From: Octopus bimaculoides
Lineage: Eukaryota
Direction of reading: 5' to 3'
NCBI RefSeq assembly: GCF_001194135.2
Contig: NC_068981.1
Span: forward strand, 75,800,490-75,852,435
Length of the DNA: 51,946 nt
The position numbers were made by a program, and so were the translations under genes. This document shows, one piece after another, positions 3,196 through 51,946 of the stretch (positions are counted from its first letter, which is position 1; each line of letters opens with the position of its first letter). The notes under the pieces are model-generated. The model was given only the letters and a program-made list of their open reading frames with translations, was not told where the DNA came from and searched no databases.

Positions 3196-3282
<87 letters not shown>

Positions 3283-3699
3283 NNNNNNNNNNNNNNNNNN
3301 NNNNNNNNNNNNNNNNNNNNNNNNNNNNNNNNNNNNNNNNNNNNNNNNNATATATATATATATATACATACAGTATAAATATGTATCTATATGTACATAT
3401 ACAAAATCACTTTGAGGAACAAAAGCATAAATTACACGAATACGCTAATATTAATACAAATGTTGTGCCTGTACTGAACTTCGAAGATTAACAATGATGT
3501 TGAATAATTAATTATTTCATGGTATCAAGTCTAATGCATCATCTTACTCAACTGCATCGTGTCGGCTGAAAGTGCATATCCACTAATAAGAATATGTGCG
3601 TGAGTGTGCGTATTAGAAAGCCCTTCACAATATTGGATTGCATATGCATTCTTTACTACAGAATCTACACAAGTTGCCTTGAAATTCCCGAGTAAAATA

Positions 3700-4460
3700 A
3701 TTGGTAACTCGGTATCATTTATTCATTTAAATGTTTCTAAATTTGGCGTAAGGTAGATATGTTACTTGATTCCATTCAGTCCATTAGTAAATCTGTGAAA
3801 TATTTTATTGTAAAGATGAATTCTAATGCTAACGTAGCGTGATTTTGGCAACCTGATCCTAAAGAGCGAGATGAAAACATTGCAATGTATTTTTTCCCAG
3901 CTTTCCGTGTTGACTATTGTTTTACTGAAGTATATCGCAGTGTCTGTATAGGATGCACACAGTATCAACCAACAAATCTAACTCTTTGTCCAACTATCTT
4001 TAAATAGCGCGTTTAAAGGTAGTGTAAAGCCCATCTAATTCCAGATATACTAAGAAAGGAATGTAGCATAGGATAACTCAATTTCGGGTGGACTATCTGA
4101 CCCAGTGTTGTCAGGTGATAATTTAGTCGGTAAACACTAAATTTCAACATTTCAAGGCGAATTCTGTACATTATGTTGTAAAGAATGGATATGCAATCCA
4201 ATATTGTGAATGATGTTGCGATTATTCTACAAACTTTTAAAGAGTTAACATCAAAATAAGCTACAGTTGCATGAATTATCCTGCCTCTATTTTTAGCTAG
4301 AATTAATTAGGAAAATTGATTACTTTCTCAAACATAATTCATCAATTATTTAAACAGAATTAAAGGCATTTGTATGGTAAATGCCATCGGAAATGTCCTT
4401 GCACTGCTCATGTATAACCAATGCTTGACCAATGGTCATGATGTTTTATATAGCTTAAAC
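3700..4460 (-). mobile_element. Possible highly decayed Helitron RepHel remnant
   Basis: Frame-shifted minus-strand pieces AVQGHFRWHLPY, LGQIVHPKLSYPMLH and ELDGLYTTFKRA resemble the Helitron pre-helicase segment (HLP..Q, GR..VHP..YYLRMLL, NG..Y.TF..A). By-eye match only. Confidence 0.3.
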
Positions 4461-4793: not shown

Positions 4794-4833
<40 letters not shown>

Positions 4834-4836
<3 letters not shown>

Positions 4837-4890
4837 ATTCAAATAAAGGTTATAAACCTCATTCAGGCATAATAAAATCCATTGAAAATA
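4834..4890 (+). repeat. Fragment of the dispersed repeat at 8225-8500 (opposite orientation)
   Basis: ttcaaataaaggttataaacctcattcaggcataataaaatccattgaa is close to the reverse complement of 8230-8280. Confidence 0.7.
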
Positions 4891-6189
4891 CCTCTCCATT
4901 TTCTCCTTATTCTTCGTGTGTGTGTGTGTACGTGTATTGCGCTTCGAATTATCACAAAATTTTCATGAATTTTATTCCTCAAACTGAAAATTAAATCTGC
5001 CTACAAGAAGTACAATACAGAGAATTAATTTTGAAATATGACTCAAATAGGTTCGACTAATAAGAATTTGACGTATATGTTTGTGATGATATTATTTGTA
5101 TATCTCAAAGGCTTTGTCAGCTTTAATATAATTGTTTAGTAATATTCTTATCATTGGTGATGGTCAAACATTGCCAATTCAGCACACGAACTATTTATTT
5201 GATCTCCGCTTTAGTTTTTATTCGTGTAACCTTTACTTTATACGTCTATTAAAGTTATTTTGTCACACATTCTGTGATCTCATCAGTGAATCTCTGCCTT
5301 ATGTATCTCCTCTTGCCCCCTTATAAGATTTTGTCCACCTATTGTATATTTGGAAACACTTATTTTTTGTAAATACGATACTGTCGAACAAAGAGAATGT
5401 GTTCCCAACACTGCATATGCATTAAAGTTCAACAGTTTTTCAATCAATCCGTTTATAAATGCTGGTAATCACTTCTGTTCTAGATGTGACTACATTATAT
5501 ATATNNNNNNNNNNNNNNNNNNNNNNNNTGTGTGTGTGTGTGTGTGTGTTTGCATTCCTTAACGGGTGCATGAAGATTAATAAGATACAATTAGGTACAA
5601 ATCTACTTATGATATAATCCAATATTAACACAAAATATCCGTATTAGTATATGTTTTACTGATGTAAATATCAATAATATGTGTTGCTCGGGAAACATTA
5701 AACGAATTATGTAATCTAATACTTTATAAAAAGAAGATACAAGTTTATATTAAGAAGAATATATGAACTTAAATTTATTGTTATATATATATAAAATAAC
5801 TTAGGAATATATCAATGTGGATTAAAATAACGATAAAATAAAACACTGTTTTCTATAATCTGGAATAGTAGTTACCTATGTATGTGTAAATTTGTTATCT
5901 GAAGATATATGGATTGCTATAATGTATATATAATTCAGAGGGAATTAATTAAAACAGTTTCTTAATTGAAATGCAAATATTGGAATTAGATATTTGTAAA
6001 CCGTTCAACTTGCAATTTTGCACCAACTTGTATCTTCAGAAGTTATAATTAATTCAAATTAATATGAATTATATGTGCCTATTGCCGACATCTCAACCTT
6101 AGTATTATATTAATCCATACGATAAGTATTTTTTAATTACACTTCAATAAACGGAGTTTGTTTGGAAATTTAGATTTTCAGAATTAGGA

Positions 6190-7368: not shown

Positions 7369-7408
7369 CAAACACACACACACACATATATATATATGNN
7401 NNNNNNNN

Positions 7409-8224: not shown

Positions 8225-8500
8225 GTATTCAGTGGATTTTATTATCCCTAAATGAGGTTTATAACCTTTATTTGAACTTATATATATATATACATGGGAG
8301 AATTTACGGAAAAAAAGCAACAGACGAAGACAGGTGGTGTAAACAACAAATGGACGTATTAGTTTAACGCTCGGCAATAGAGAAAGTCTTTGACGTTCCG
8401 AGCCTACGCTCTTCAACTGAAAGGAACACAGAAAGAAACAAGGAGAGGAACAAGGAGAAAAAGATATAAATGTAGTGGTCAGCGATCTATCATGGCGAAT
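8225..8500 (-). repeat. Dispersed non-coding repeat, probably PLE-terminal-repeat derived
   Basis: 8293-8500 is closely similar to 19941-20146. The minus strand carries TTGAAGAGCGTAGGCTCGGAACGTC, a hammerhead-like or PLE-end-like motif. (TA)n lies inside. Confidence 0.7.
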
Positions 8501-8920: not shown

Positions 8921-8981
<61 letters not shown>

Positions 8982-9398
8982 CATTGAAATACATCTGTTT
9001 GACTGAAGGTAAGTAGATTCACATCATGTCAATTAGAATTCATGAATGTCCTCTTCAAAATTATACGTTCGATTAATTCAATTAGTCTCGTCATACTAAC
9101 TCTGGTTTTTATTTATATATTTTATGGTTTCTTCAGCTGCTGAGTTTTTTTTATGCCATAATTCACATTCGTTTCTTACTGTATTCTTGTCTTACTTTTT
9201 TCCCTATTCATTCTTTTCCGATTTTTTTTTTCTGAAATATATGTCTATATTTCACTTTTCACATTTTTCATCACTGCTTTTAATTTTCAAATAGAGATCA
9301 TTACTTTAATTGCAAATGTAAAAAAAAAATGTTACATTAACATCAATAAATACAAAATCAGTATCCATAATAGCAAATCTTAAAAAAATATTTCAAAG

Positions 9399-9473
9399 AT
9401 AATAATGAGAATAATAATGATGACGATGAAGACGACGACGACCACGACCACGACGACGATGATGATGATGATG

Positions 9474-9552
<79 letters not shown>
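9399..9552. repeat. Compound trinucleotide microsatellite (GAT/GAC/AAT)n
   Basis: Direct inspection; explains the poly-L and poly-I ORFs. Confidence 0.95.
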
Positions 9553-9556
<4 letters not shown>

Positions 9557-10296
9557 ATTTTTAAAAAATGAAAAAAAAATAGCATGCTTCGAGCAGAAAA
9601 TTGAATATAATTTTATTTACCGGAGATAAAAAATAATGCAAAATCAGTTGATTCCTTTCAAAATGATCTAAGGCACGTAATACTAAATATATGTAGAAAA
9701 TGAGAACAGCATTAGCGATAACAAGAGCATTAACAATATAGTGATGAATGTGCAAAGGAAACAAATGTCAACCTTTATTTTTGATAGATATATTTCATAA
9801 AGTATATTGTGGATTTAGTTAGGTGGGAATCGTGTTCATGTTTACATTATTCTGATCGTGATAATCAACTAAATATATATATATTATTAAAGTCTTAGTA
9901 ATGTATATCTACAGTTTTCCATTGAGTAAAGTCTATACATACCAGAGAAAAATGTAGAACAAAATTTTTTTAAATGCTGTTAGAAAGTGGAATTGTAGAA
10001 AACAAATGGTAGAAGAGAAGATGTGTAACTAATTCTACAATGAAGAGTAATTATATGTGTTAGTGCATGAGTTCTTGAAGAATGAAGGATGGATGAAACA
10101 TGGAAAGAAATTAAATTAATAAGATAGAATTGTTGAGATATTGGTATCTATATTCATCACCTTTGTAGAATTGTAGATGAACAAAGTGCATATACATTCA
10201 TATATGCTTAATATATTCGTGATGTAAATGCAGCATTTTTACGTCTTGTGTGAGCAAACATCCATACACACGCATTCACATACAATATATACGGAC

Positions 10297-10327
<31 letters not shown>

Positions 10328-10467
10328 CATTATTTACTTTATTTCAAGATGTCTTACCAATAGAGAAAAAAAACCTCTTTCTAACCTAGATCCAAGGTTC
10401 CTTCTTTGGGATTTTAACATCATGAACAGGGTATTTTTGTATGTATGTGTGTATCTATATATGTATG

Positions 10468-10700
10468 TATGTGGAAATTGTGTGTGCTTGTTAGTATTTT
10501 GGGGATTTACACATCAATGGATCGGATCTCATCAAGCGTCCAATCAAGCAGCCCAAATGTTGGTATGAGTACTGGCACTGCAAATACATTGTGGGCCACT
10601 GTATTATTGAATGCAAAGAATTCTGAGGACCACATTTTCTTTATTCGGCTGTAATATTTATTCAACTGTAAGATATATTTTCACCTTGTCCTAGATACCC
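10468..10700 (-). mobile_element. Non-LTR retrotransposon RT C-terminal fragment, R4/Dong-like
   Basis: Minus strand: GYLGQGENISY, then YSRIKKMWSSEFFAFNNTVAHNVFAVPVLIPTFGLLDWTLDEIRSIDV*IPKILT. This resembles the post-YLG region of R4-clade RTs. Confidence 0.55.
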
Positions 10701-10740
10701 GCAACATTCCTCGCAGGAATGTGTTATAGCTTTCAATGAA

Positions 10741-10858
10741 CCTTTTCAACATATCTTAGTATTTTACCAAGTCCTGCCTATAAAACTCCACATTTCTCTT
10801 CGACACGCCGGTCGCTGCCGCAAAGATTTTGATATTTTTTCGTTTTTTTCTTTTTCGC
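10741..10858 (-). repeat. Duplicated 5' ORF1 segment of element B
   Basis: 10741-10852 is ~90% identical (by eye) to 11754-11866, direct orientation. Confidence 0.9.
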
Positions 10859-12117
10859 TTTTCACAGGGTGGGTTGCTGGGGAATTTGGGGCTCCTGTTT
10901 GTCTGCTTGTGTGTCTGTAGTGTCAGGGTCAGGGTCAAAGTCAGTGTTTGGTGGGAAAGGACGAGGACCGGGTTCGGGGGTCATCATCATTGGTGTGATT
11001 TCGCTTCCTCCACTTTCTGTTTGTGTTAGTGACTGCATTCCATAGATTTACTGTCTCTTCCTCCACTTGTTTGTCCTTCCTTTCCGTTGCACAGGGTTCC
11101 TCTTCGCATACTCCCTCATTCGGCGTCACAGTAGCTGGAAGTGTTGTTTCCCCCATTACCAGTAGGAACACCGGTATCTTGGCCGGAGATGGAAGCATCT
11201 TGGCCGGAGATGCTCTTATGTGGCCCTTCTGGTCACATTTGTAGCAACGCGGCTTTCTGCCTTCCACTGCAACCCTCAATCTCTTATCACCCACCACAAT
11301 GGTGTCGATGATATTTTCTAGATCTCCGGGGAAGCCTGGAAGACGATTTCCAGTCATTGCCCCAGCCAGTTCTGCTTTGGTGTATTTGTGGCATGGAGGA
11401 TCGATATTTTCACCTCGAAGCCTATCATTATCGCTGCCATCAGCCAGACAAAACCCCCCGGTGGTACCTCCTCTACCCTTACCCAGGAACCACGCCTTTC
11501 AAGGTCAGATGATAGTAATATAATCTCCTCTGTTTTCTTCTGTCGGGAACTGCACTTCTACTGATGCGTATTTGGCGCCCCTGGCCAGGCACGTTATTTC
11601 CGGCCAGATGGATGCCTAGCACGTTTCAATTTGTACCTTGTTTGCCATTTCAGTTTTCTTCTCCGTTATCGCATATGTCTGAAATATCATCGTTTTCTTG
11701 CAAATGTCCCTCGTAATTTCGTTAGGCGGGGTCAGTTCTACCTGAAACCCCTGCCTTTTCAACATTTATTGGTGTTTTACCAAGTCCTGCCTTTCAAACT
11801 CCACATTTCTCTTCGACACGCCAGTCGCTGCCGCAAAGATTTTGATACTTTTTCGTTTTTTTTTCTTTCCCTCTTCTTGCCTACTCCTCCTAAAAGGCAC
11901 TCGGGAAATACGTTAATTCACCATGCGACAGCTCCACGTCAGATGAGCTTACATCTTCGTATTTCATCATACAGCCCCCTTTCAAACAACGGGAAAACGA
12001 CAACTGGACTGCCGCAACGATTGTTTTCACAAAGGCACGCAGTAACAACGTTCAACAGAGCAACAACCGTAATATAACAAGTGACACTAACCGTAATTCA
12101 CGACTCTAACTCTAGAC
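10859..12117 (-). mobile_element. Tx1/L1-type LINE element B: 5' UTR plus disrupted ORF1 (zinc knuckle), no ORF2
   Basis: EITCLARGAKYASVEV (~11555-11600). ORF 10941..11357 has DTIVVGDKRLRVAVEGRKPRCYKCDQKGHIRA, a CCHC knuckle whose last Cys is lost in a short tandem duplication. Homologous to ORF1 at 44.2-45.0 kb. Confidence 0.75.
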
Positions 12118-12132
12118 GGACACATTTCGAAT

Positions 12133-13858
12133 TAATTTTATCATGACCATAAAGGCCTGACATACAGGGGACAAAACATGGACAGACAAACACATATATG
12201 GGGGCAGAAAAACAAAACAAATGAGAAATGAAAAGAAAAAAAACATAAAAGGATGGAACGGCGGCCGCTCGAAACCCCACTTCCCATTGGGTCTTTTTTA
12301 ACACAATTATTATTTTACTCATTAACAACAGTTTTTATATTCCTCTTTCGTACAAGTCTTTTATACTTACAATTTCAGTTAAATTCATCCCAGTTGTATC
12401 CACTTGATTCACAACTGCCATAGTTTAACTTTTAAAATCGGTCTCATTCTTCTCTTGTAGTCTATAATCTAGCTCCTTACCAATAATCAAACTTCTCGCT
12501 CCAGGGCATTGGTCATGCTACTCCACCTCTATACCGTCCTTTGCATTGTCTAACTCCATCATCGTCTGTTTATTATTCTTGTAACACAAAATAAGGTACT
12601 GCTTTTCTTGAGGTGGGGGCTGGGACGTTTTTAGTGCTGGCATGAATTTATGTGTTTGGGGAGGAGCATGGTCAGGGTAGGTGTTTGATGGGGTAGAGCG
12701 AGAGCTGGTGCTTGCGGGAACGGGTTGAGGTAGAGTGGGGCAGGTTGGGGGAAGGGTGGGATCGGGTTGGGGTTCTTTTTCCTTTTCTCCCTGTTTGTCC
12801 TTTTGGTCACCTCTGTCCACTTCTCTGTTGTTTCCACCTGTTCAGCTGGTTCCTTGCTGCAATCTTCTACCTTTGATGTCACGAGTGAAGGTGCTTTCTC
12901 CACCGGAGTTACTTTTTGTAATTTTGCAGGATGGGGAGGGCATTGGTCTCTTATGTGGCAAATCTGGCCACACTCGTCCTCCTACCCTCCACCATTAGCC
13001 TCAACTTTCTTTCTCCTACCATGATGGTGTCCAAAATATTATCCAGTGTATCTGGGGCAGCCTGGATAACAATTTCCAGGCTTTATCCTTTCTCGATTCT
13101 CACCAGTATTCTTACGGCCTGGAGAAATGTCACTATCTCTCCAGGTCCAACACTATCGCCGCAATCAACCATACAGCGTCCACCTCTGGTGGTTTCTCCT
13201 CCACCCTCACCTTGCACGTCTTCCAAGGTAAGAGGGTGGGAGGATTATCTCATCTATCGATACTGAGGCCACAGAGTGTTGCTTGGCCTTCTCGTCTGTG
13301 AAAAAATACACCTCCACGGTAGCAAATTTGGTACCTCTGGCAAGGTATATCATATCCGACCAGATGGGCGCCAAACACTTATCAATTTCTTTCCTCTTTG
13401 CTACGTTAATGCATTTTTATTTTTTAATGAACGTTTTGAATATTACTGTTTTTTTTGTCTACGTTCTGAGCCACGTCGCCGGGAGGGGATCAATCTTATT
13501 TGATGCCCCTTCCTCAACAACATATTTCCATACGTTTTCAACTCCTGCAGTTTGATTTAAAAATTTTTCCTTTTAGGTTTGGTTACATTCGCAAAATTCT
13601 ACTTTTGATTTGTTTCTCTCTTCTGCAATCCCTCCTCCATATTAGTTAGCACTTCACTAGCTTACCCTCCGACGAATTCATGTCGGAAGAGCTAATTACG
13701 CCACACTTCATTTTTCAATCACACGCTTCCCCCACTCAAGCAAGGGGAACAACGACAACAGTCCCGCTCGCGCGGAAGAAACAAGGTGTCCAAACGCACA
13801 TAAAATAAGAAGCTACGAAGCTTACCAACCTTAAATAACAACGTCGAAAGCCGAAAAA
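12133..13858 (-). mobile_element. Tx1/L1-type element A: 5' UTR, disrupted ORF1, T-rich 3' UTR; ORF2 absent (HAL1-like architecture)
   Basis: SDMIYLARGTKFATVEV (~13310-13360), LDTIMVGEKK, knuckle remnant CGQICHIRDQC, low-complexity tail (ORFs 12518..12820 and 12631..12903). A T-rich segment ends ...GATAAAATTA. Bracketed by 15-bp near-identical repeats at 12118-12132 and 13859-13873. Confidence 0.75.
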
Positions 13859-13873
13859 GGACAAATTTCGAAT

Positions 13874-14157
13874 GCCAGGAACGCAGTTCAAGTTGAATTT
13901 TATACCCATAACCTCCACGAGATGCCCGTGCATTTCGGTTTACATAACAATTCTTTGCGATTGCCACCCTTGGCATTCAACACAGCTGCGTTTTGGCGTC
14001 TCATTTCAGGGAAGTTGAAAGGTTACCTGCAATTTGGGTCTCAGCCATAAACCAGCATGTCGAGGAATATTTACACGTGCATCCCCGAAAAAATTTTTCA
14101 GAATTTACCATATAAAAAGGATATTTGAAAAGATCGCGTTTCTTTTGCGGTTCAGTG
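13874..14157 (-). mobile_element. ~285-bp Tc1/mariner-like terminal sequence, shared with 45258-45523
   Basis: About 80% identical (by eye) to 45258-45523. The minus strand begins TA|CACTGAACCGCAAAAGAAACG, like a TA-flanked Tc1-type TIR. No partner TIR found in the window. Confidence 0.5.
13898..13904 (-). promoter_or_regulatory. Candidate TATA box (GGGTATAAAA) 31 nt upstream of the first base of the 15-bp junction motif
   Basis: TATAAAA starts at 13904 on the minus strand. The A of GGC|ATTCG (Inr-like) is at 13873. Absent from the 45-kb copy because of a deletion. Confidence 0.3.
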
Positions 14158-14728
14158 TATAAATGAAATTACATACGGGTGCTTATATGTATTTATGTGT
14201 CTGTTTCTGTGTGTGTGCATGCATACATGCATGTACTTGCGTATGTATGTGTATATGTATGTATATATTTACGTACTTATCAGTGTTTCCATGTGCATGT
14301 TTGTAACTCAAATTAGCAGGGAAAGAACTGCCTCTAAGAACCGAATGAGTATGACATATGTTAACAAATTAGATACAAACACGAATAATAGAATACACGA
14401 CAAAGTAAAAACTAATGCCAAAATCGCATTGCACATATAATATAAAAAAAAAGGAGGCCATTAATATTCTAACAAATATGTTCTATGTCACTTTTATCTC
14501 GACATAACATACATTCATATTTGTCAAAATGAAAAGTATAACAATCCTATCATATTTAAAAGCTAGTCTCATTCAGAGTTCGTATTCAATTGAGTGGCAT
14601 CCTTTTCTGCTAGCTTAATGTTTTCTTCATTCTCGTTAATTTCTTTTAGTTTTCATTTTCTGAATGAGTAAATTTCTTAGCGTACTGATACGGAAATCTA
14701 TTCTATATATCACAATGAACTTGTAAAA

Positions 14729-18050: not shown

Positions 18051-18373
18051 TATATCAAACGTCTAAAACATAAAGTTGCCTCTTCGACAGGGAAAAACTT
18101 TCAGGATCTGAACCACACCTTTCCATTTACATGTAATCATTGACGAAAGAATTCACAATTGAACATCAAGAGTAGCAATGTATCCCACTAGGTGGACCTG
18201 CGATCATTTAATGTCTACTCTTCTCTAATAGCAAATAAATATATCAGGTTCGGAAACCAACTAAATTTAGTATTTTGAAATGACTTATTCTGGCTGTAAC
18301 ATAAGGGATAAACTTGTTTGTAACACTACCGCTGCAATTATTCAAACAAAAGACTTGAAGTTATATATATACA

Positions 18374-19653
18374 CAGACATGCAGGAAGTAAATAGACACG
18401 TTTAATTTTCAAAATCTTTTATTTAATATGCGAAGCGCACAATTGAGATGTAATCGATAGGGAGGACTACGTACTTCAGTATTTAGTTGATATTTCTTTT
18501 GCAGTTTTTAATTCAGAAACTCTTTTGGGCATCGAACTGATGAGCTTTGTGATTGTCTCTAGTGGAATTTCTGCCCACTTTACACGCAACAATCGAAACA
18601 ATTCATCTTTAGATTTTGGTTTCTGTCGAGTTGTTCGTATAGCTCTCTAGTATGCTCCAAAGATTTTCAATTGGGTTCATATCACGAGATTGGTTCAACC
18701 AAGGAAGCTTTTTGATCCCATTTTTAGTCAGCGATTGTTGATTCCTTTTCGCTATGTGGCATGGCGCCCCATCTTCCGTGAATCCATGAATCCATGAATA
18801 AAAACTCATTTTTCGTTATGTTATCGTGTGAATACATCGGACGTAGTCCTTGCTTAAGTATTTCGATGTATTTTTCAGAGTTTATGGCTTCAACATATTC
18901 GATCAGCGTAGAACAGCCATTGATGGCTGGTGACAGCTCCCCATATCCTTACAGATGTACCGTCATGTTTCACAGTTGGTTGGAATCGTTTCAAATCAAA
19001 TTCTTGATTGGGGGGACTCCAGACCCAAACACGTCCACTGTCTGAAAATAATGCAAATCTGTATACATTTGAGAAAATCATTCTATCCCAAAATGAACTG
19101 GATTTATCTGACATCTCCTTAGCACATTTATTTCGTTTTATGATATTAATTGATTGCAGGAGAGGTTTTCTTCTAGCTGCTCGTCCATAATACCCAAGCT
19201 TATGCAGATATGTAAGACGCGTTCTTGGCCTAACTTCTAGCTATTTTACAATGTCAGAGGCCTTCGGACAGGGTTCGCTTTCCGCACTTCTCTTCAAACA
19301 GCGAAGCTGCCTTTCTGAAGGCTCAGGTCGGCCGGGAAGAGAATCTATTGATTCTTTTCCTTGGCTTTTGAATTGCACTATAATTTTATTAACTGTAGCG
19401 AGAGAAATTTGAAGATTTCCTGCAATTTTTCGCTGGCTAAGACCAGCCTCAGATTGCACAATAATACGACTTCATTGAAAATATAACAGTTCTTCTGAAT
19501 ATTTTGTTCGTGGCAAATGTTTAATATAAAGGCACGTGGAATGAAAAAAATGAATCACTATATTGTAAATTCTACACCGCTTAAAGCATATTAAGAGGCT
19601 TAGATCAGAAAATTTTGAAAATTAATGGTGTCTATTTACTTCCTGCATGTATG
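18374..19653 (-). mobile_element. Full-length, inactivated Tc1 (DD34E) DNA transposon
   Basis: ~42-bp TIRs (acatgcaggaagtaaatagacac..ttaattttcaaaat) at both ends, in TA-rich flanks. Transposase pieces: HTH QRKIAGNLQISLATVNKII, GRAARRKPLL, RVWVW, and EDGAPCH..WLNQSRDMNPIENLW with 34 residues between D and E. Several frameshifts and stops. Confidence 0.92.
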
Positions 19654-19940
19654 TATATATATACTTGTTTCAGCTGCTATGTGGGTGCCGTCATCGAGAA
19701 TTTAGTCACAGAAATGAAACATAGTAGTTATATTTTTATGTATTATACTCATTCACTTTGTCTTTTTTGCTACAACTCTTCGATTCGGGAATCTAAACAT
19801 GTCGCTAGAGAGATAGATAGATAGATGGAAAGAAAGACACACACACACACACACANNNNNNNNNNNNNNNNNNNNNNNNNNNNNNNNNNNNNNNNNNNNN
19901 NNNNNNNNNNNNNNNNNNNNNNNNNNNNNNNATATATATA

Positions 19941-20146
19941 TATGGGAGAATTTACGAAAAAAACAACAGACGAGGACAGGTGGTGTAAACAACAAAATGA
20001 TGTATTAGTATAACGCTCGGGAATAGAGAAAGTATTCAACGTTTCGAGCTACGCTCTTCAACTGAAAGGAACACAGAAAGAAATAAGAAGAAAAACAAGG
20101 AGAAAATATATATAAATGTAGTGGTCAGCGATCTATCATGGCGAAT
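19941..20146 (-). repeat. Second copy of the 8225-8500 repeat
   Basis: Close match to 8293-8500; motif TTGAAGAGCGTAGCTCGAAACGTT on the minus strand. Confidence 0.8.
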
Positions 20147-20166
20147 GCCGAATAGAAATATATATA

Positions 20167-20332
20167 CGACGGGCTTCTTTCAGTTTCCACCTACCAAACC
20201 CACTCACAAGACCTTGGTCGGCCCGAAGTTATAGCAGAAGACACTTATCCAAGGTGCTGCGCTGTGGGACTAAATCCGTAACCATATGGTTGGTAGGCAA
20301 GCTACTTACCACACAGCCACTCCTACACCCAT
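20167..20332 (-). mobile_element. tRNA-type SINE, family A
   Basis: Reverse-complement match to 51763-51917; A-box-like TGGCTGTGTGGT; ends in ..GAAAGAAGCCCGTCG-(TA)n. Confidence 0.85.
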
Positions 20333-22049: not shown

Positions 22050-23738
22050 ATTCATTGTTTTATGAAGAATATTTTAGAGTGTGTCAGATTCTTTATCCTT
22101 TTTCTACGTAGATTTGTTTTGCGGTGTGTGATGTAGAGTGTTGCGATTGCACATTGTTATTAATGCATGACTGTGATACTAGTATTCGCCAATGTAGCAT
22201 TGAGAGTTGCTTCGTTTACAACTTTTGTTTTCAAAAGGGTGATAGTAGGTTACCCTGTTCATTAGCAGCTTCGTCTTAACTTTACATGTTTCTGATGTTC
22301 TATTGATAAGAAGGTTCTTGGTTTTGATCTTGTTAAAATATCTTTTTAGTTTATGAGCCTGCGTGATGCATTTGAATTCTATGTATTTGCTTGTTCGATT
22401 TTTGTTATACGTTTGATTCAGAGAATAAAACAAATGGGTGATTTGTGTATTTTATATGATGTTCACTGTGATATAGTTTTTGCATTGTATTTGAAGCTGT
22501 TTTCTTTTATAGCACGGTCTAGTAGTCTATAATTAATGTTTATTTTATTCTGCGCTTCCCTTTCTCATCTGTATTGTATTTGGAGGAGAATCTAAACTTT
22601 TCGCTTAAAAGTGATTTTTTCACTACTGACGTTTATAGCTGTGGGGGCATTCACTGTTTTCAAGTAGGTATATGATGTTTTGTTGTTTTCAATTTGTATT
22701 TCTATATCAAAAATGATAAAATCATTTGTCTTATTATGGATGTTAAATTTTGATATGGTGATCTTTTCTATATTTCCTTTTCGGCTTTCTACGACCTTTA
22801 TTTTAACCATTATCTATAGTTTACGTATAGGATATATATTTTATGTCTTTAAGCATTTTCCTTTTCTATGTAATGTGTAGAAAGAATGCAGAAAATATAG
22901 GCTGTGAAGGTCTGCCTATGGTTACTCAAACAATATAGAAGAAAGGCTAGCAAAAATGTACCTCAGTCGTACACGTCATCACTAGTTTTAAAATAAGTTT
23001 GCTGGTATGGCTTGTTGCTATATTGTTGAGTGCTTATATACATTCTCTATTATGATTCCTTTCGTATTTGCAAATGGGACATTAACCTATAAGCTTTCTA
23101 CATTTAATGTGATGATATATATTGTATTGGCTTCTTTATAAATCTGTACAACTTCCTCAGATGATCATAAGCTATATTTCTCTTTTACATATTGCTTGAT
23201 AATTTTTTGTATTTTTTTCGAACTTGATTGGGTAGGTGTATTTCGTTGAGATATTATAGATTTTATTATACTATATATATATATATAAGCAATGTTAAAT
23301 CTCTGAACGAGGTATTAACAGTAACTGCACCATAAAGTGAAGTGGCAAATATACTTCACTTTATTTATATATATATATATATATNNNNNNNNNNNNNNNN
23401 NNNNNNNNNNNNNNNNNNNNNNNNNNNNNNNNNNNNNNNNNNNNNNNNNNNNNNNNNNNNNNNNNNNNNNNNNNNNNNNNNNNNNNNNNNNNNNNNNNNN
23501 NNNNNNNNNNNNNNNNNNNNNNNNNNNNNNNNNNNNNNNNNNNNNNNNNNNNNNNNNNNNNNNNNNNNNNNNNNNNNNNNNNNNNNNNNNNNNNNNNNNN
23601 NNNNNNNNNNNNNNNNNCATATTCAAAAGAGACAGAGACTTCAAATTCGATATATCGATTTATTCACCACTCTATGTTAACATTTCTGTGAATTTGAAGT
23701 CTCTTTTGAATATGAAATTTAAAAGTTTAAAAATCTTA

Positions 23739-30010: not shown

Positions 30011-30595
30011 TGCGTTTAGCGCAACTATACATATATAGCCGATATTGATGTAGACTTTGTTGTATGGAATTATATGATATTTTAAAATATAGAGATAAGA
30101 ACTACTTAATAATAAATTAGATTTTAGACTGTCCTGTGTCTACAAGATTATTCGTGCCTTTAAATAAGCTGACAATTATTTAGTGTATCATATATATATA
30201 TATATATATATATTTCATTTTTTTGGGGTGACTAAAACTTCTTTTCTTTAAGCCCTTTCATCTATTAAATATTAGTAATCATAATATATACCTACCCAAT
30301 CCCACTGGTAAACCTATTCTATCACAGTTAATATAAATATACTATTTTTCCTAATAATTCTGTAATTTTTAAATATCCCCTAAATATGAAATATAACATC
30401 TATGATCTGTTACTATCGTACCTAAATTATTGTTCTTCGTTGTATTCTAAATATATTTTCTTAACCTATTTCTAACGATAATTTTAATTCTATTTCATCT
30501 CCATTATAACCCGGTATAATTATGCCTTTTTCCATCTAGAATTAATGATTAATTAATATTCTGATTATAACGATTTATGTAACAATTCTATTATA

Positions 30596-31873
30596 TCAGG
30601 TCATTAAGAATGAAATGTCCGATTTTCTTATGCACCAAGTTTGACAGTCGTTAACTATAATGTTTTATCCTAACAATTCTTTGTTTTACAACATTGAAGA
30701 GTTACATTACTTTTCGAAATGCAATTCATGGTGTCTGATTATATTGTGAGTTTTTCTCTTGTAAATCAATTTTTTGAACAAATGTTTTGAACCAATGAAT
30801 AGATTGTTTATGAATATAAGTTCCGTCGTATAACCAATGCATCACGGAGAGTTCGAAACAGCAATGAGGTGTTTGGTGAAGATGTGGCGAAGGAGCCCAC
30901 TGTACGTCGATGGTTTGCGAAGCTCCGGTCTGGTGATTTTACTCTTGAAAATCAACAGCGTGGTAGACCTGAGACTAAGGTGGATAATGATGAGCTAGAA
31001 ACTGTAGTGGAAGCCGATACCTCACAAACTACACGTGAGTTAGCAGCAATGTTTGATGTTTCGATTCCAGCTGTATTGGACCATCTCAAACAAATCGGCA
31101 AGGTAAAGAAGCTGAACAAGTGGGTACTACACAAACTAAACGAGTATCAAATGACACGTCGTCTTGAAACTTGCTGTTCTTTGCTGTCACGGCATAAAAG
31201 CGAACCATTTTTGCATGGTGTTGTTGCGAGTGATAAAAAAAATGGATTCTTTTCAACAAACGCAAGCGTTCTGCACGGTGGTTGGATAATGACGAAATGC
31301 CGAACAATCTGAACAAGAATATTCACCGAAAATGCTAATGGTGTCTGTTTGGTGGTCCAGCACTGGTGTCATCCATTACAGCTTCATGAGACCTGGTAAG
31401 TCAATTACAGCAGATATATACATCAACAAATTGGATGAAATTATGATCGTACTTGCAATTAAACATGAGATTTGTCAATAGAGACAGGTCAATTCTCTTG
31501 CAAGACAATGCTCGACCACATGTTGCACAAAGAACGCTACTCAAGTTACAGGAACTGAACTTGGAAGTACTCTGTCATCCATCATATTCACCAGGTCTTC
31601 CACCAACTGACTATCATGTTTTCCAGGCATTAGACAACTTTTTACAAGGAAGAAACTTCAAATCTGAAGAAGATACAAAAACAGCCTTTCGTGATTTCAT
31701 CAACACTTGCGCTCCAGAATTCTTCGCTGCCGGCATAAATATGCTACCGATAAAATGGCAAAATTGTGTTGATAATTTAGGTGCATACTTTGATTAACGG
31801 CATTGCCTTTTCTTCAGATAAAATAAAATAGACTTTCAGTTCAAAATCAGACATTTCAGTCTTAATGACCTGA
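30596..31873 (+). mobile_element. Near full-length mariner (DD34D; Hsmar1/cecropia-like), inactivated
   Basis: ~31-bp TIRs (tcaggtcattaagaatgaaatgtccgatttt, 2 mismatches) flanked by TA at 30594-95 and 31874-75; 1278 bp. ORFs 30869..31312 (TVRRWF..GRP..KWVLH) and 31453..31797 (LLQDNARPH..HPSYSPGLPPTDYH, 34 residues between the Asp). Frameshifts near the first Asp. Confidence 0.95.
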
Positions 31874-33086
31874 TAATATATTCTTTATTTTCATTTTATA
31901 TTACCTTATTTACTTTTTATATATCTTGGTATAGCATCTTTTATTGACTTACTCTAGAATTTGTTTTTAAATAAAGAATTTTTTAGTATAACATTTCAAT
32001 AATTTTTATTATAATTTTTTTATTATAGTTTTTATTATAAATCTTCTTTCAGATATTTTCTTATATTTCCTCGTTATAAATCTTCTTTCTTATTTCCTCA
32101 TATCTTAAGATTGTACATACCCTTCATGTATTTTTCATAATTTTTATGTTTTATTAATACTTTGACAATTTTAAAATTTTCTTCCATATATCCCACTGAG
32201 TACTGTGGACCTAAAATTATAAAAGTATTATATTTTTATTACACAATACTTTTTTTTATATATTTCATATAGTTTATATTTTTATAATTTTGCATATATA
32301 TCCTTTACATTTTTTATTTACTCATATTTTATCTGGTTATATTTTTATTTTTACTTTTTATTTCCTTATATTTTTAAAATTTTCATAGCATACAAATCTG
32401 GTGGCAATTTATAGTTTTTTAATTTTTTTTAAATACCTTATATGCTGCAATCGTACATTATGAATTATACGTTATCCCCTTATTTAGTTATATTTGAAAA
32501 TTCTTTCTAGCTTTTATATATCCGTATATTTATATTTTGCTTTAATGTTATAAGTAAACTAAGTTTAAAACTCACGCCTTCCATTTCTCTCTTAACTTAC
32601 ATCCCGCCCATAATCCTTTAAAAGGTATTCCTTTTAACAGTTCAATTTTCCTACCCTTTTAAGATGACGGTCAAAACAAGCTTTATTAGCTATCCCTTTT
32701 CACTCCCCCAGCATACATCCTCCTTTACCACCCCATGACCAACCCTTTGATGTTGATATATCCGGATGTAAAGTTCCATTTTCGTAGATAGTAGAACTGT
32801 CTGTCATGATACTAATTAATTTATAACTCCCCAAAGATCTAATGTGCTTTGAAGACTACATTCTCACCATTGTCATCAATATGTAGATAATGGGGTCACT
32901 ACACTCATTCATCCCTCCTCCCCACTCTAACTTATGCTAATTTCTTATTTGTCTGTCGCTGTACTCTCCTTTTAACGTGTTGCCAAAAAATTTAGCAGCG
33001 GAATCCTTGTAAATATTTGCTCTCTATTGATGATATTAATACATTTTAATATCGAACGTGTCCCTCCTTGCTTGATGTCTATGCAG

Positions 33087-33599: not shown

Positions 33600-34457
33600 N
33601 NNNNNNNNNNNNNNNNNNNNNNNNNNNNNNNNNNNNNNNNNNNNNNNNNNNNNNNNNNNNNNNNNNNNNNNNNNNNNNNNNNNNNNNNNNNNNNNNNNNN
33701 NNNNNNNNNNNNNNNNNNNNNNNNNNNNNNNNNNNNNNNNNNNNNNNNNNNNNNNNNNNNNNNNNNNNNNNNNNNNNNNNNNNNNNNNNNNNNNNNNNNN
33801 NNNNNNNNNNNNNNNNNNNNNNNNNNNNNNNNNNNNNNNNNNNNNNNNNNNNNNNNNNNNNNNNNNNNNNNNNNNNNNNNNNNNNNNNNNNNNNNNNNNN
33901 NNNNNNNNNNNNNNNNNNNNNNNNNNNNNNNNNNNNNNNNNNNNNNNNNNNNNNNNNNNNNNNNNNNNNNNNNNNNNNNNNNNNNNNNNNNNNNNNNNNN
34001 NNNNNNNNNNNNNNNNNNNNNNNNNNNNNNNNNNNNNNNNNNNNNNNNNNNNNNNNNNNNNNNNNNNNNNNNNNNNNNNNNNNNNNNNNNNNNNNNNNNN
34101 NNNNNNNNNNNNNNNNNNNNNNNNNNNNNNNNNNNNNNNNNNNNNNNNNNNNNNNNNNNNNNNNNNNNNNNNNNNNNNNNNNNNNNNNNNNNNNNNNNNN
34201 NNNNNNNNNNNNNNNNNNNNNNNNNNNNNNNNNNNNNNNNNNNNNNNNNNNNNNNNNNNNNNNNNNNNNNNNNNNNNNNNNNNNNNNNNNNNNNNNNNNN
34301 NNNNNNNNNNNNNNNNNNNNNNNNNNNNNNNNNNNNNNNNNNNNNNNNNNNNNNNNNNNNNNNNNNNNNNNNNNNNNNNNNNNNNNNNNNNNNNNNNNNN
34401 NNNNNNNNNNNNNNNNNNNNNNNNNNNNNNNNNNNNNNNNNNNNNNNNNNNNNNNNN
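33600..34457. other. Assembly gap (largest of seven: also 3283-3349, 5505-5528, 7399-7408, 19856-19931, 23385-23617, 41262-41517)
   Basis: N runs, each bordered by dinucleotide microsatellite. Confidence 1.
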
Positions 34458-34523
<66 letters not shown>

Positions 34524-34524
34524 A

Positions 34525-34555
<31 letters not shown>

Positions 34556-34610
34556 ATGTATGTATTTATATATGTCAAGAGAAAGATTTGCACATGCAAG
34601 TTTTATTATA

Positions 34611-41261: not shown

Positions 41262-41517
41262 NNNNNNNNNNNNNNNNNNNNNNNNNNNNNNNNNNNNNNN
41301 NNNNNNNNNNNNNNNNNNNNNNNNNNNNNNNNNNNNNNNNNNNNNNNNNNNNNNNNNNNNNNNNNNNNNNNNNNNNNNNNNNNNNNNNNNNNNNNNNNNN
41401 NNNNNNNNNNNNNNNNNNNNNNNNNNNNNNNNNNNNNNNNNNNNNNNNNNNNNNNNNNNNNNNNNNNNNNNNNNNNNNNNNNNNNNNNNNNNNNNNNNNN
41501 NNNNNNNNNNNNNNNNN

Positions 41518-41570
<53 letters not shown>

Positions 41571-42202
41571 TACACATACACACACATATATATGTATATA
41601 TATACCCACATACGAATGTATAGATACGCATAGAAATATTCGCAGGCAATCATGCATACACACATACACGCACGTACACATACAGACACACACAAGCGCA
41701 CGTACACACAGAAGTTTGAAAATATCAATATACTGATTCTTTATGAACATTTCAGAATGTGTGAGATGTATGCTGCAAAATAATTTCTGTTTCAAATGAA
41801 GTACAAGAAGTAAATTATACATTTATTGCCATTAGGATCCTTATGAAAGAACATAGTGAATAATGAATAATGAATAATAATGAATAATGGTGACTTCACT
41901 GATCATTCAGGTGTTTTAGAAATCATAGCTAGTTCTTTCTCAAAATACATATCCAAACACCTTTAGGTATGCACAATGTCTGAAATTTTGTAGGAGCTAG
42001 TCGATTACATCGAATCCACTGCTCAACTGGTGGTTATTTTACAGACTCCGAAAAGTGGAAAGGGAAAATTTGAAGTCAGAGCGTAAAGACACCCGAAATA
42101 CTAGTAAATATTCTCACTGGCATGGTAGCGATTATGACATGGTACATACATACATACATACACACACACATACATACATACATACATACATACATACATA
42201 CC

Positions 42203-42630
42203 GGACACAGACAGTGTTCGTTAGTCAGATGTCTTCCTGGGGCTAAAAACAACAGTAACACGGTCCTTTGTAGGACCGGTACATTAAGTTGGCAAATATA
42301 TTTTACGATTCCGTACAATTACTGTTTAACTATCGCTTTAAGATTTAACGTAGCTTATTTCTCAGTTTTGAAGATCAGCGACATTTTGTTGCTGAAAAAC
42401 GCATATTGTATTTTGCGGATGACTATCACACACTGAAGACGAGTAACTACCCAGAAACCCGGGTGTGTGTGTATTACGTAAGGCTAGAGATGGAAGTGAT
42501 GAACTTCCCTTGCTAATACTAATCTGGCACAAAGAGTGTGCCGTTATCCAACTGGAGGAGATGTCTACCTGGGGCTAAAAATAATAGTAACACCGCCCTC
42601 TATGGGACCGCCACATTTACTGGACAAATA
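42203..42630 (+). repeat. Partial tandem repeat (period 332 bp) enclosing a degenerate hammerhead at 42427-42471
   Basis: agatgtcttcctggggctaaaa (42227) versus agatgtctacctggggctaaaa (42559). Between them: CACACA-CTGAAGA-CGAGTAACTACCCA-GAAA-C-CCGG-GTG-TGTGTG. Confidence 0.65.
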
Positions 42631-42888
42631 TATATATCAAATGGAGACGAACACCTTTCTTCCATGTGATCAGCTTCATAAATTAGGGCACTGGGATATT
42701 TTGCTACTTTTCTGAACACGAAACCAATCGTGGCCTTAATTCAAAATTAAAGACGCTCTATGCACTAATGAGGTGTCAAACACGCATTTTAATTAATCTT
42801 TCGACTTTTACAAATGAAGTCGAACACACACGATGTGTGTGTTATATATCTTATAACAATACATGTGACGGCCTCTAGCCATTCATTT

Positions 42889-43030
42889 TTGCTGCTACTA
42901 CTATTACTAGTAGTAGTGCCACTACTACTACTGTTGCTGCTGCTGCTACTACTAATACAATTACCACTACCATCACTACTACTACTACTACTACGACGAC
43001 GACGACGACGATGATGATGATGATGATGAC
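42889..43030. repeat. Compound (CTA/CTG/GAC/GAT)n microsatellite
   Basis: Direct inspection. Confidence 0.95.
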
Positions 43031-43408
43031 GTTCCAAAAAGAAAGTTTATGAGTTAATAGATTCTACATAAACTCTATTTAGTGATACTTATTAACTATA
43101 AATAAAACCCCTTTCATAGTATGATTGGTTAATATCATCATCCGATCGTACTTATTGTACGGATTATGCTAGGTCACTCTTGATTGTTACTGGTAATATG
43201 TAACCCATTACAACCTGTTTTTGCCGACTAGTCTGATAACACCACCAAGCTTCCTTGGCGAGGTGCAGGACGAAAAATAAAATGTTTCGAATGGCGGAAG
43301 AACTCATAAGTAATCAGTGGCTATCCTATAACGTTTACAAATATAAATATTGTTTATATATTTTTATTTCATTTATATTTTTAAATCATATTTTTCAATG
43401 TATTCTAT

Positions 43409-43942
43409 CTACCGATCTGCCAGATGAAAGTGACTGGACAGATCCATGAAATGCGGGTTTCCCCTCCTATCCGAATTGGAGCCAACACTATTTACCCGTG
43501 CATCGTATATAGTGTTAAAGTCGCCTAACAGTACTGAAGTGTGTAACGTGCCTAGAAATTTCTCTAGGTCTCCAAAATACTCACACTGTCCAGTACCACT
43601 GGGTTCATAAACAGCTACCAGCTTGAATGCCTTACCACTGCTGGGTGTCACATCAAGGACGACCAACCTGCCCTCCGAGTCAACAAAGATTGTTCTAGTC
43701 TCAATATCCAGATTTTTCCTGAACAGCACAGCAACACCTACTCCGCCTCCGAGTGCGCATGGAGAAATAATTTTCGCGTAGCCGATTAGGAGGAGGGAAA
43801 CGTCTCGCAGACTACTCAACCTGGTCTCTGTAACTGCTATTACATCCAAATTATGCGACCTGAGGTCATTCAGGAAACATCCGTGCTTCCATGACGACCT
43901 CAAACCGTGGGCATTTATACATCCTATTTTGAAAGAAACCAT
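43409..43942 (-). pseudogene. 3'-truncated LINE ORF2: APE (L1-EN/Tx1-type) endonuclease
   Basis: 177-aa open frame with INAHGL, VIAVTET, GGGVGVAVLF, DSEGRLVVLD, VAVYEP and LLGDFN motifs. No RT follows. Confidence 0.9.
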
Positions 43943-45242
43943 TAAAGTAAAGGCTTACCTTCTTGATGGGAAGTAATTCCCATCTTAATCTTCTGCTCCG
44001 GGGCTGGGGGGATGTCGTGGACAAGTACCTCAAAGATTTGTGGCGAAAAATCCCATATTGGAGGGCTTAAGTCGAGTTTGAACTCACTACGGTGTATAGT
44101 GATATTATTTGTATCAATTTAAAAAATTTCAATGTATTTCGGTGTGTTAAATTCTTATATCAAATTTGCCGTTGGGATATTATTAATTTTCGTCAGTAAA
44201 CATTCATATTTTGCGTTTGGTCGAATGGTTGAAAATAATTTCCCTCTTGGGGTCTGAATTTTCTAAATTATTTCTTTTTCGGTGCTTTTTTTCGATGTCG
44301 GGCACGATGGTGCAGGTTGACAATTTATTCTCTTTTGCTTTTTTGTCTTCCATTGTTTTTGCCATTCCGCTTCTTCTGTATTTTTCCTTCAGTTTCTTCT
44401 GTTGGTGTTGATGATTCTGATGATGACGGTAATGTTTTCGCTTCTGGAGTGTCTTCTGGGGGTGGAGATTTCGGTGCTTCCTTGTGCAGATTTGCACTCG
44501 GCTCTGATGTGGCCTAGCTGACGACATCTAAAACACTTCCTCCCTTCTACTATTATTCGGAGCCTGTTATCTCCCACCTCTATAGCCTCTATTATATTCT
44601 CGATGTCGACAGGGAAAGCTTGAACAATCATTTCAATCTCCTTCCCCTGCCAGTTTTGACAGTCTGTTACTGTTGCTTTTAGGATTGCCATTTTTCTTCC
44701 ATTCCGAAGCATATGTCTGCCACCAAACATCCTGCATTCCCTTCCGATGGTATTTCACCTACTTTAATCCTAGACGTTCTTCTGCCTAGGTAAGTGGGTA
44801 AAAGTACCACCTCTGCTGTCCTTAGAGTTTCTATAGAGTGACGTTTCGCCAGCTCGTCGGATTTGAATTTTACTTCCACCGTTGCATATTTTCTTCTTGT
44901 TAAGAACGTTATATCATTCCATTTTTGTTTCAAAGCTAGTTCCATGGCTTCTTTGGAAGCTACATCTAATTTTTTGTCTTTAACAGTCCAATGTTTGTAA
45001 ATTACGGTTCTCTTTTCGACACTTTCTATAGTTTCATAGTCATGGGCAATTTATTTTGGTTCTTGTCACTGCCCTGGCGAATAACAATTTCCCCTTGAAA
45101 CGTGGGTGGGGCACATCGAAAAGACTTTCACAAACGTTAACATGTGTAACAACAAATGTAACAAATGTAACAACACAAAGTTCAACAAATAAACAACGAC
45201 ATATATAATTCACAGTACAACATAGTAATAAACCCAAAATTC
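43409..45242 (-). mobile_element. Tx1/L1-type LINE element C (5' UTR, frameshifted ORF1, start of ORF2)
   Basis: ORFs 44679..44945 (TFLTRRKYATVEVKF) and 44389..44730 (VEGRKCFRCRQLGHIRAEC, intact CCHC knuckle), followed by the APE ORF. Confidence 0.85.
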
Positions 45243-45257
45243 GGAGAAATTACGAAT

Positions 45258-45523
45258 GCCAGGAGAGCGGTTCAAGTTGATTTCTGAGATGCACGTGTAT
45301 TTCGGTTTTTATGACAATTGTTTTTACTGTCACCCACGGCATTCAACACTGCTGCGTTTTGGCGTCACGTTTCAGGTAAAATTGAAAGGTTACCAGCAAT
45401 TTGGGTCTCAGCCATAAACCAGTATATCTTGGAATATTTACTCTTACGTCCCCGAAAAAATTTTCAGAATTTACCATATAAAAATAACATTTGAAAAAAT
45501 CACGTTTTATTTTCGGTTCAGTA
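45258..45523 (-). mobile_element. Second copy of the Tc1-like terminal sequence
   Basis: Matches 13874-14157, e.g. gcaatttgggtctcagccataaaccag is identical. The minus strand begins TA|TACTGAACCGAAAATAAAACG. Confidence 0.5.
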
Positions 45524-45527
45524 TAAT

Positions 45528-45593
<66 letters not shown>

Positions 45594-45952
45594 TGTGTAA
45601 TTCGAATAAGAACACAAAGAGACACTTTTACTCATCTTTAACAATTGTTTCTGTGTCAAATCTGCTTCCAAATAAAAATTCACGCAATATTTCCGGTTTT
45701 AGGCATTATAGCGGCACTTCCGCAGACCTATCAAAGGTGCGAATTTATGTTGTGTTATATATATATAACATAAAGTAGGAGAATGCAGTTAGGAAATCGG
45801 TACTTCTCCTTTGTCAAGAGTATACTGACAAAGAACTAAATTCAATAATTTTAATGTAGGGTAATACATTTGTTTGCTTCATTCATTTTGTTTATTGTAC
45901 ATACCGTGCATATTTATGCGTGTGTTTGGAAATATTTTCTTTTCCTTTTTAT

Positions 45953-51081: not shown

Positions 51082-51187
<106 letters not shown>

Positions 51188-51762: not shown

Positions 51763-51917
51763 ATGTGGCTGTGTGGTAAGTAACTTGCTTCCCAACCACA
51801 TGGTTCCGGGTCCAGTCCCACTGCGTAGCACCTTAGGCAAGTGTCTTTTACTTTAGCCTCGGACCGAGAAAGCCTCGTGAGTGAATTTGGTAGACGGAAA
51901 CTGAAAGAAGCCCGTCG
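51763..51917 (+). mobile_element. tRNA-type SINE, family A
   Basis: gtggctgtgtggtaag (A-box-like), ggttccgggtccagtccc (B-box-like), and a tail gaaagaagcccgtcg-(TA)n. Confidence 0.85.
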
Positions 51918-51946
51918 TATATATATATATATATATATATATATAT

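Follow-up and report, generated by a model that had tools for sequence, protein, structure and literature searches.

Why should pieces of long interspersed nuclear elements (LINEs), some of them too diverged from one another to be aligned as DNA, all begin at one short motif, and why should that motif join two of them to the same repeat? The question is raised by a stretch of 51,946 nucleotides from Octopus bimaculoides (contig NC_068981.1, positions 75,800,490 to 75,852,435), referred to as the window in the rest of the text, which holds three such pieces, elements A, B and C. An earlier note on this DNA had proposed that different LINE subfamilies hit one site in the end of a DNA transposon. 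The core of that proposal stands, as one and the same repeat, here called X, meets diverged LINEs at a single exact position, and a further copy retrieved from outside the window extends the observation; the identification of X as a transposon is not supported.

Three LINE pieces share a 15-bp start and two of them adjoin the same repeat

A 15-bp motif, given here in its minus-strand reading and referred to as the 15-mer, lies immediately 5′ of the 5′ untranslated region (5′UTR) in all three LINE pieces, which are all on the minus strand. Taking as reference the copy at the junction of X and element A (ATTCGAAATTTGTCC, 13859-13873), we count two mismatches in the copy at the junction of X and element C (ATTCGTAATTTCTCC, 45243-45257) and one in the copy between the 3′ end of element A and the 5′ end of element B (ATTCGAAATGTGTCC, 12118-12132), which has no X upstream. 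The earlier note had placed the motif at these positions, as the 5′ boundary of three elements carrying a first open reading frame (ORF1), and had described element A as exactly bracketed by the copies at 12118 and 13859 with element B beginning right after; both descriptions are correct. At 13859 and 45243 the motif simply forms the innermost part of the X homology, and only the copy at 12118 is independent. A loose pattern allowing up to three mismatches gave 3 matches compared to 2.77 expected from shuffled sequences, which is not above chance. A 14/15 match such as that at 12118 would be expected by chance 0.0045 times per window, and about 4e-6 times within 50 bp on either side of the A/B junction. 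A longer remnant of X at this junction was considered and rejected, local alignment recovering the 15-mer only (score 25, shuffle mean 20.6, maximum 32).

At locus A, X spans 283 bp (13874-14156, minus strand), begins with ACTGAACCG and finishes with ...TTCCTGGC. These limits come from blastn and MAFFT comparisons with the copy at locus C, which spans 265 bp (45258-45522, minus strand) and carries a 17-nt internal deletion relative to that at A. By blastn, 13859-14217 and 45243-45581 share 77.5% identity over 360 columns, while the MAFFT alignment of the two X copies has a mean column identity of 83% and similarity stops sharply at the 15-mer on the LINE side. Past that point neither A nor B gives a blastn match to C, their LINE bodies being unalignable as DNA, and the conceptual ORF1 proteins of A and B share 40-47% identity with that of C. 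The earlier description of one segment of ~285 bp, ~80% identical, at 13.9 and 45.3 kb beside far more diverged 5′UTRs and ORF1s is therefore accurate. On the far side of X and on that of the LINEs, loci A and C have unrelated flanking sequences.

A further copy from outside the window

All the related DNA that was retrieved came from Logan assemblies of runs SRR11869384-94, from which short contigs were retrieved by profile searches seeded with APE endonuclease and ORF1 sequences. Among them, L014 (2085 bp) is colinear with window positions 14049-13056 through X, a variant of the 15-mer (ATTCAAAATTTCCCC), the 5′UTR and ORF1, and its flanks differ from those of the window loci. It shares 80.8% identity with locus A in X (146 aligned nt) and 71-72% in the LINE parts. 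Loci A and C and L014 all read ...TTCCTGGC, then the 15-mer, then the LINE 5′UTR, to the base, and element B has the 15-mer only. The junction of X with a LINE is base-precise in three independent copies belonging to two lineages. The first bases of L014 belong to a (TA)n run at X position ~100, which in copy C is occupied by ATATAC; as the contig may simply end in an internal expansion there, we did not count it as a truncated X.

Element A (12133-13858) and L014:169-1891 are colinear over ~1.7 kb, and their homology stops at the same 3′ nucleotide, where they read ...GGCCTTTATG(G/A)TCA..ATAAAAT(T/C)AATTC and ...ATAAAATYAATTC. Neither contains ORF2 similarity detectable by tblastn. As L014 is colinear, ends at the same nucleotide and likewise lacks ORF2, these two copies show element A to be a discrete ~1.7-kb unit with ORF1 only and a genuine 3′ end, rather than a random fragment. 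We considered whether element A ends instead within the first codons of ORF2 and rejected this possibility, as its end has no significant DNA similarity to the inter-ORF region or ORF2 start of element C and is the terminus common with L014.

The two ends of X

On the outer side of both window copies, homology fades into TGTAATT followed by a compound (CA)n(TA)n microsatellite. In the plus-strand reading, a compound (TA)n(TG)n microsatellite (45523-45599) adjoins the outer end of X at locus C, and a decayed equivalent (14157-14300) adjoins that at locus A; no model explains this association well. The last one or two bases of X are not the same in the two copies (TA-CACTG at locus A, AT-ACTG at locus C), beyond which weak similarity (TGTAATT) continues outward. 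Since the outer end adjoins (TA)n in both copies, a flanking TA is uninformative as a target duplication. ORFs in X gave no Pfam match. X was ruled out as a small-RNA gene, a ribozyme or a tRNA-derived short interspersed element (SINE), ARAGORN and Rfam searches being empty even at E≤10 save for microsatellite 'miRNA' noise. Metagenome scans with X patterns returned 0 matches and then 8 seed-only chance matches, and literature and sequence-string searches for X found nothing.

Near its inner end X contains an inverted repeat (13867-13980, minus strand) with arms TTGAATGCCAAGG (13968-13980) and CCTGGCATTCGAA (13867-13879), the 3′ arm overlapping the first 7 nt of the 15-mer. The arms recur in C (45334-45346 and 45250-45263) and likewise in L014, with a loop that varies by 17-30 nt. 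As the arms are almost invariant across the three copies, they offer no covariation support for a structure.

The same junction has promoter-like features. GGC-A-TTC at the start of the 15-mer fits the initiator (Inr) consensus CAKTY, and in element B the heptamer AGTCGTG (12099-12105, minus strand), at +28 to +34 from the A of ATTCG in the 15-mer, fits the downstream promoter element (DPE) consensus RGWCGTG. The corresponding box is CGACGTT at +28 in A (13840-13846; 5/7) and AGACGTT at +29 in L014 (6/7); C has none. A relaxed Inr-DPE pattern occurs twice in the window, compared to 2.7 times in shuffled sequences, and only the position of the two occurrences, both at LINE starts, is noteworthy. 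A promoter reading of the 15-mer and box, which draws on the LINE promoters known from Drosophila, is suggestive only. In a related LINE contig, L001:90-125 (ATTCGAAAG...GGACGTG) has a similar initiator/DPE-like spacing ~300 bp upstream of the start of ORF2, and may mark where a copy lacking ORF1 begins.

Proposed site-preferential insertion and its alternatives

The reading to which we incline, albeit tentatively, is that X is a dispersed repeat with one fixed point into which LINEs of the L1/Tx1 type preferentially insert. X would be older than the insertions and might be the end of an element bounded by terminal inverted repeats (TIRs), although the latter is unproven. At least two deeply diverged LINE lineages would insert preferentially at its inner end, at ...TTCCTGGC/ATTC, represented by the C type, with its ORF2, and by the A/B type, to which an ORF1-only deletion derivative belongs. 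On this reading the 15-mer would be the junction sequence, its first bases (ATTCGAA) belonging to the inverted repeat of X, and its presence at every LINE 5′ edge would mean that each insertion duplicates it or creates it anew, or else that the LINE 5′ end mimics the target. A second insertion at the same point would yield the head-to-tail order X-A-B. We infer from these comparisons the prior existence of X, the site specificity of the endonuclease and the length of any target duplication, which would be 15 bp or only ATTC.

The mosaic pattern of identity argues for targeting, as X is ~80% identical between A and C while the adjacent 5′UTR and ORF1 give no blastn match and the ORF1 proteins are 40% identical. 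LINE 5′UTRs normally evolve faster than ORFs, yet X is the conserved part, so that treating it as a separate entity is the simpler explanation. Site-preferential insertion is also favoured by element B, which has the 15-mer without X exactly at the natural 3′ end of A, as validated by L014. An outer end of X next to a microsatellite is not unusual for a TIR element here, because other elements of the window that look TIR-bounded have (TA)n ends (for example 4819-4886 / 8228-8295). Many elements of the Tx1 clade are target-specific, their targets including piggyBac, Mariner and Harbinger transposons and, in one case, a site ~300 bp from a transposon end (PMC4494074), and both L1-Tx1 and Tc1/Mariner families belong to the coleoid repeat complement (PMC8967140; PMC13282606).

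Several results weigh against this reading. The 3′ flank of L014, the one copy outside the window in which a 3′ junction can be seen, is ATTCATTCTTTGGAT and matches the 15-mer at 8/15 positions, of which ATTC alone is convincing; after the unit the contig reads ATTCATTCTTTGGATGC..., with ATTC (and TTTG) in common with the 15-mer. As this flank is not the 15-mer, the 15-bp duplication is not reproduced, and the suggestion of the earlier note that the 15-mer behaves like a target-site duplication is not supported. Nor is the flank a LINE 5′UTR or a window sequence, both of which were rejected (z about 0, no matches). No solo X was found, either in the window (2/2 copies are occupied by a LINE) or among the 19 Logan loci. 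In known target-specific systems most target copies are empty. X gave no match to Pfam, Rfam or tRNA models and belongs to no recognised family. The outermost 24 nt of X recur nowhere in the window in inverted form at ≤6 mismatches, though a partner could lie outside it, and no transposase was revealed when the ~1.7 kb past each LINE array (8980-10745 and 41710-43410) were scanned with Pfam in six frames. The earlier note had seen a TA-flanked, TIR-like terminus and a Tc1-like transposon end in X; given an outer end that fades into microsatellite, terminal bases that differ and the absence from the searched DNA of a second inverted terminus and of a transposase, neither claim could be upheld. 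The divergence of A from L014 is roughly co-ordinated (81% identity in X, 71-72% in the LINE), which fits a single co-transposed unit. Finally, four more distant relatives (L005, L010, L011 and L018), whose 5′ ends are imprecisely defined, have no X upstream.

Several of these observations would be expected if X were instead a leader or promoter module at the 5′ end of the LINE, sharing its transcription and retrotransposition and exchanged between two lineages by recombination, an explanation that needs no target specificity and that we regard as a serious though rather unlikely one. The 15-mer would then act as an initiator inside the element (C-A+1-TTC), a DPE-like box lying near +28, and transcripts starting there would give B-like copies without X. 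All three known copies of X lie upstream of a LINE and none is solo, L014 is colinear with X and A as one unit whose parts diverged roughly in step, the first base of B is the A of ATTC, and the 15-mer is missing from the 3′ flank of L014, all as this explanation would have it; CATTC moreover fits the arthropod-type CAKTY, and RGWCGTG at +28 is perfect in B and 5/7 in A, with 6/7 at +29 in L014. However, a 283-bp non-coding module would have to hold ~80% identity while the ORF1 proteins fell to 40%, or to have been swapped recently between the lineages. Element C has no DPE-like box, the Inr/DPE pattern is no more frequent than in shuffled sequences (2 vs 2.7), DPE use in molluscs is assumed, and the microsatellite at the outer end of X is left unexplained.

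The joins could also be made during reverse transcription, head-to-tail chimeras arising when the reverse transcriptase (RT) switches template from the 5′ end of one LINE RNA (ATTC) to the 3′ end of an A-type or X-containing RNA, a process resembling that of U6-L1 chimeras. The 15-mer would in that case be the LINE's own 5′ terminus. The natural 3′ end of A lies exactly at the ATTC of B, the L014 unit is also followed by ATTC, and the A-type 3′ end (..AATTC) has ATTC as microhomology with the 5′ start of the LINE. We nevertheless consider template switching improbable: X would have to be an abundant RNA with its 3′ end at ...CCTGGC, although it has no tRNA, Rfam or polymerase III-type feature, the sequence downstream of L014 has no significant similarity to any LINE 5′UTR, and three identical X/LINE joins in two lineages would need a very strong acceptor preference. 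Still further from what we would expect, X could belong to a retroposon on the plus strand, either a SINE or the 3′ end of a LINE, with a (TA)n(TG)n tail and placed head-to-head with a minus-strand LINE. Both window copies do end in ...GGTTCAGT followed by AATTAC(AT)n(TG)n on the plus strand, but an identical head-to-head join at three loci still requires site specificity, X has no tRNA-, 5S- or 7SL-like head, the (TA)n of L014 stands at X position ~100 and not at an end, and other compound microsatellites are not preceded by X-like sequence; this explanation is very improbable. Hardly credible, lastly, is the proposal that the loci are old segmental duplicates or products of gene conversion and that the 15-mer at 12118 is coincidental. 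In its favour, all copies are decayed and lie in repeat-rich DNA, but the flanks beyond X and the LINEs are unrelated, the LINE bodies come from separate lineages, the third copy, L014, has other flanks again, and a 14/15 match at the A/B junction has the very low chance expectation given above.

The site-preferential reading can be taken further, to a cephalopod Tx1-type lineage whose strict specificity for one site has survived the divergence of ORF1 to 40% identity, with an ORF1-only derivative at the same site, repeated hits that build arrays, and a 15-mer that is both re-created target and initiator. In this extended form it is, in our estimation, doubtful.

Comparison with known systems

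Tx1L of Xenopus laevis, a LINE of the Tx1 clade, has a single insertion site in the non-autonomous piggyBac transposon Tx1D, according to the account of it in PMC4494074. The octopus elements are similar in that a dispersed repeat meets, at one precise point, an L1-superfamily APE LINE whose ORF1 is of CCHC type, with a junction common to the copies. Tx1L copies are flanked by duplicated target sequence. Unlike Tx1D, X shows no TIR pair in the window and no recognised superfamily, its host is a cephalopod, and the target duplication is not reproduced in the second copy. In crocodilians, Mariner-N4_AMi is the target of Tx1-Mar families, and Harbinger transposons receive Tx1-9_AMi at a point ~300 bp from their 5′ end (PMC4494074). 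There too, several related families use one target, and an insertion a few hundred bp from the target end is the geometry that the earlier note had envisaged; the crocodilian case is however built on many copies, both flanks and an RT phylogeny, compared here to 5′ junctions that number three, a single 3′ junction that is uninformative, and the absence of an RT.

The 5′UTRs of L1 elements can be modular, as in the A, Tf and Gf monomers of mouse and the serial replacement of 5′UTRs in primate L1. X resembles them as a discrete upstream module with a sharp boundary before diverged LINE bodies, and some copies are without it; it differs in being present once per element rather than in tandem, and its sharing across lineages with 40%-identical ORF1 proteins would be unusual. 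The Drosophila LINEs jockey, Doc, F and I have internal promoters made of Inr and DPE. The octopus LINEs are like them in starting at the A of CA(G/T)T(C/T) with an RGWCGTG-like box near +28, but the box is absent from element C and such promoters are not established for molluscan LINEs. Mammals, for their part, have ORF1-only, non-autonomous L1 derivatives known as HAL1 ('half-L1'), to which A and L014, with n=2 copies only, are comparable in that they keep the 5′UTR, ORF1 and a defined 3′ end and have no ORF2.

If the LINEs do target X, transposon-targeting Tx1 LINEs would be extended from vertebrates to molluscs, together with an ORF1-only derivative, and the end of X with the 15-mer would form a compact target for testing the sequence specificity of an L1-type endonuclease. 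The ORF1-only derivative would be a natural reporter of trans-mobilisation, provided that the site preference is real. Preferred landing sites are already known for the L1/Tx1 group, so that even then the X system would be at most a new instance, in a new phylum. If X is a carried leader, the loci would show ordinary LINE anatomy, with a shared 5′ module and an initiator-like start, and be of use mainly for octopus repeat annotation.

Classification and structure of the LINEs

Element C (43409-45242, minus strand) comprises the 5′UTR, ORF1 and the first 177 aa of ORF2, and ends before the RT. Its ORF1 (44389-44945) has one frameshift and a zf-CCHC domain (PF00098, E 4.5e-05), and the start of ORF2 (43409-43942) codes for an intact 177-aa APE endonuclease (PF03372, E 2.8e-11). 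Searches by tblastn with full-length relatives found ORF2 sequence in the window at 43412-43942 only, and no RT of this LINE family is present in the window. A profile of the element C APE and its relatives matched human L1 endonuclease structures (E about 2e-10), and it did not match the endonucleases of R1Bm or TRAS1 at E≤1. Distant full-length relatives, with 31-33% identity in the APE, combine APE, RVT_1 and zf-RVT domains. In ORF1, Pfam detected no RRM and no Transposase_22, the part upstream of the CCHC having conserved motifs only. Because the domains fit, with a CCHC in ORF1 and an APE of L1 type, assignment of the window LINEs to the L1 clade as Tx1-like elements is plausible; the label Tx1-like in the earlier note agrees with these two domains, and the RRM remained undetected by Pfam. 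A direct protein search with the APE ORF gave no match, an exact-protein look-up for the window ORF found none, and the named relatives of the window LINE proteins are Octopus bimaculoides UniRef entries only. A 21-bp unit (ACAAACGTTAACAAATGTAACA) is repeated 3.1 times at 45130-45197, inside the 5′UTR of element C.

Element A (12133-13858, minus strand, ~1.73 kb) divides approximately into a 5′UTR (13430-13858), a decayed ORF1 with frameshifts, stops and a CCHC remnant (12760-13440) and a 3′ region of ~570 bp or slightly more (12133-12759). Element B (from approximately 10864 to 12117, minus strand) consists of a 5′UTR and a decayed ORF1, after which it ends; its C-terminal ORF (10941-11357) carries a CCHC with a weak Pfam match. 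The 5′UTRs of A and B are homologous, and their ORF1 regions are 65% identical at the DNA level. The 3′ ends of B and C are lost, while that of A is followed by the 15-mer and B. Directly after the ORF1 of B, a 123-bp segment (10741-10863, minus strand) re-copies 11754-11876 of its own 5′UTR, 1013 bp downstream and with 90% identity, and B stops there; this could be a local duplication or a template switch. Adjacent to it, an open frame at ~10500-10740 on the minus strand (…NTVAHNVFAVPVLIPTFGLLDWTLDEIRSIDV*), with no Pfam match, resembles the region downstream of the RT domain of another LINE type and is followed by a (CATA)n run, with a tail at 10299-10327. It looks like a 5′-truncated foreign LINE that cut off element B.

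A CCCC...GGGG hairpin-like box lies 105-150 nt after the 15-mer in all related LINE 5′UTRs (~13735-13760 in A, ~11985-12010 in B, ~45085-45110 in C, and in L005, L011, L017 and L018), and a second box, GGGG...CCCC, stands just upstream of ORF1 in related LINEs. Two Logan loci, L011:971-1666 and L016:245-1011, are internally deleted LINEs whose ORF1 runs directly into the C-terminal portion of the RT. A diverged X upstream of either was rejected, since the gapped alignments reached only the ~95th-97th percentile of a real-sequence background and ran into coding sequence.

Repeat context of the window

The window is AT-rich (~33% GC), and the X/LINE loci affect no gene. Compound (TA)n/(CA)n microsatellites recur every few kb across it; besides the two at X (14157-14300 and 45523-45599), compound (TA)n(TG)n tracts lie at 51084-51187, 3204-3282 and 34459-34575, and such tracts are very frequent and share one common polarity. 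Three of them (14160, 45531 and 51084) are preceded by AATTAC(AT), and the window's compound microsatellites other than the two at X have no X-like sequence or common 3′-end motif in front. Seven runs of N mark assembly gaps (3283-3349, 5505-5528, 7399-7408, 19856-19931, 23385-23617, 33600-34457 and 41262-41517), several of which adjoin microsatellites, so that the repeat structure nearby may be incomplete.

Two other repeats are unrelated to X, namely a SINE-like repeat of ~175 bp in three copies (20152-20332, 46162-46354 and 51765-51944) that are 82-86% identical, and a 217-bp pair (8284-8500 and 19932-20146) that is 90% identical. In addition, four inverted-repeat pairs with 89-94% identity look like TIR-bounded elements or miniature inverted-repeat transposable elements (MITEs). 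They lie at 4819-4886 / 8228-8295, 3624-3685 / 4149-4210, 18364-18418 / 19609-19663 and 30594-30626 / 31843-31875, and the first and third have (TA)n directly outside both arms.

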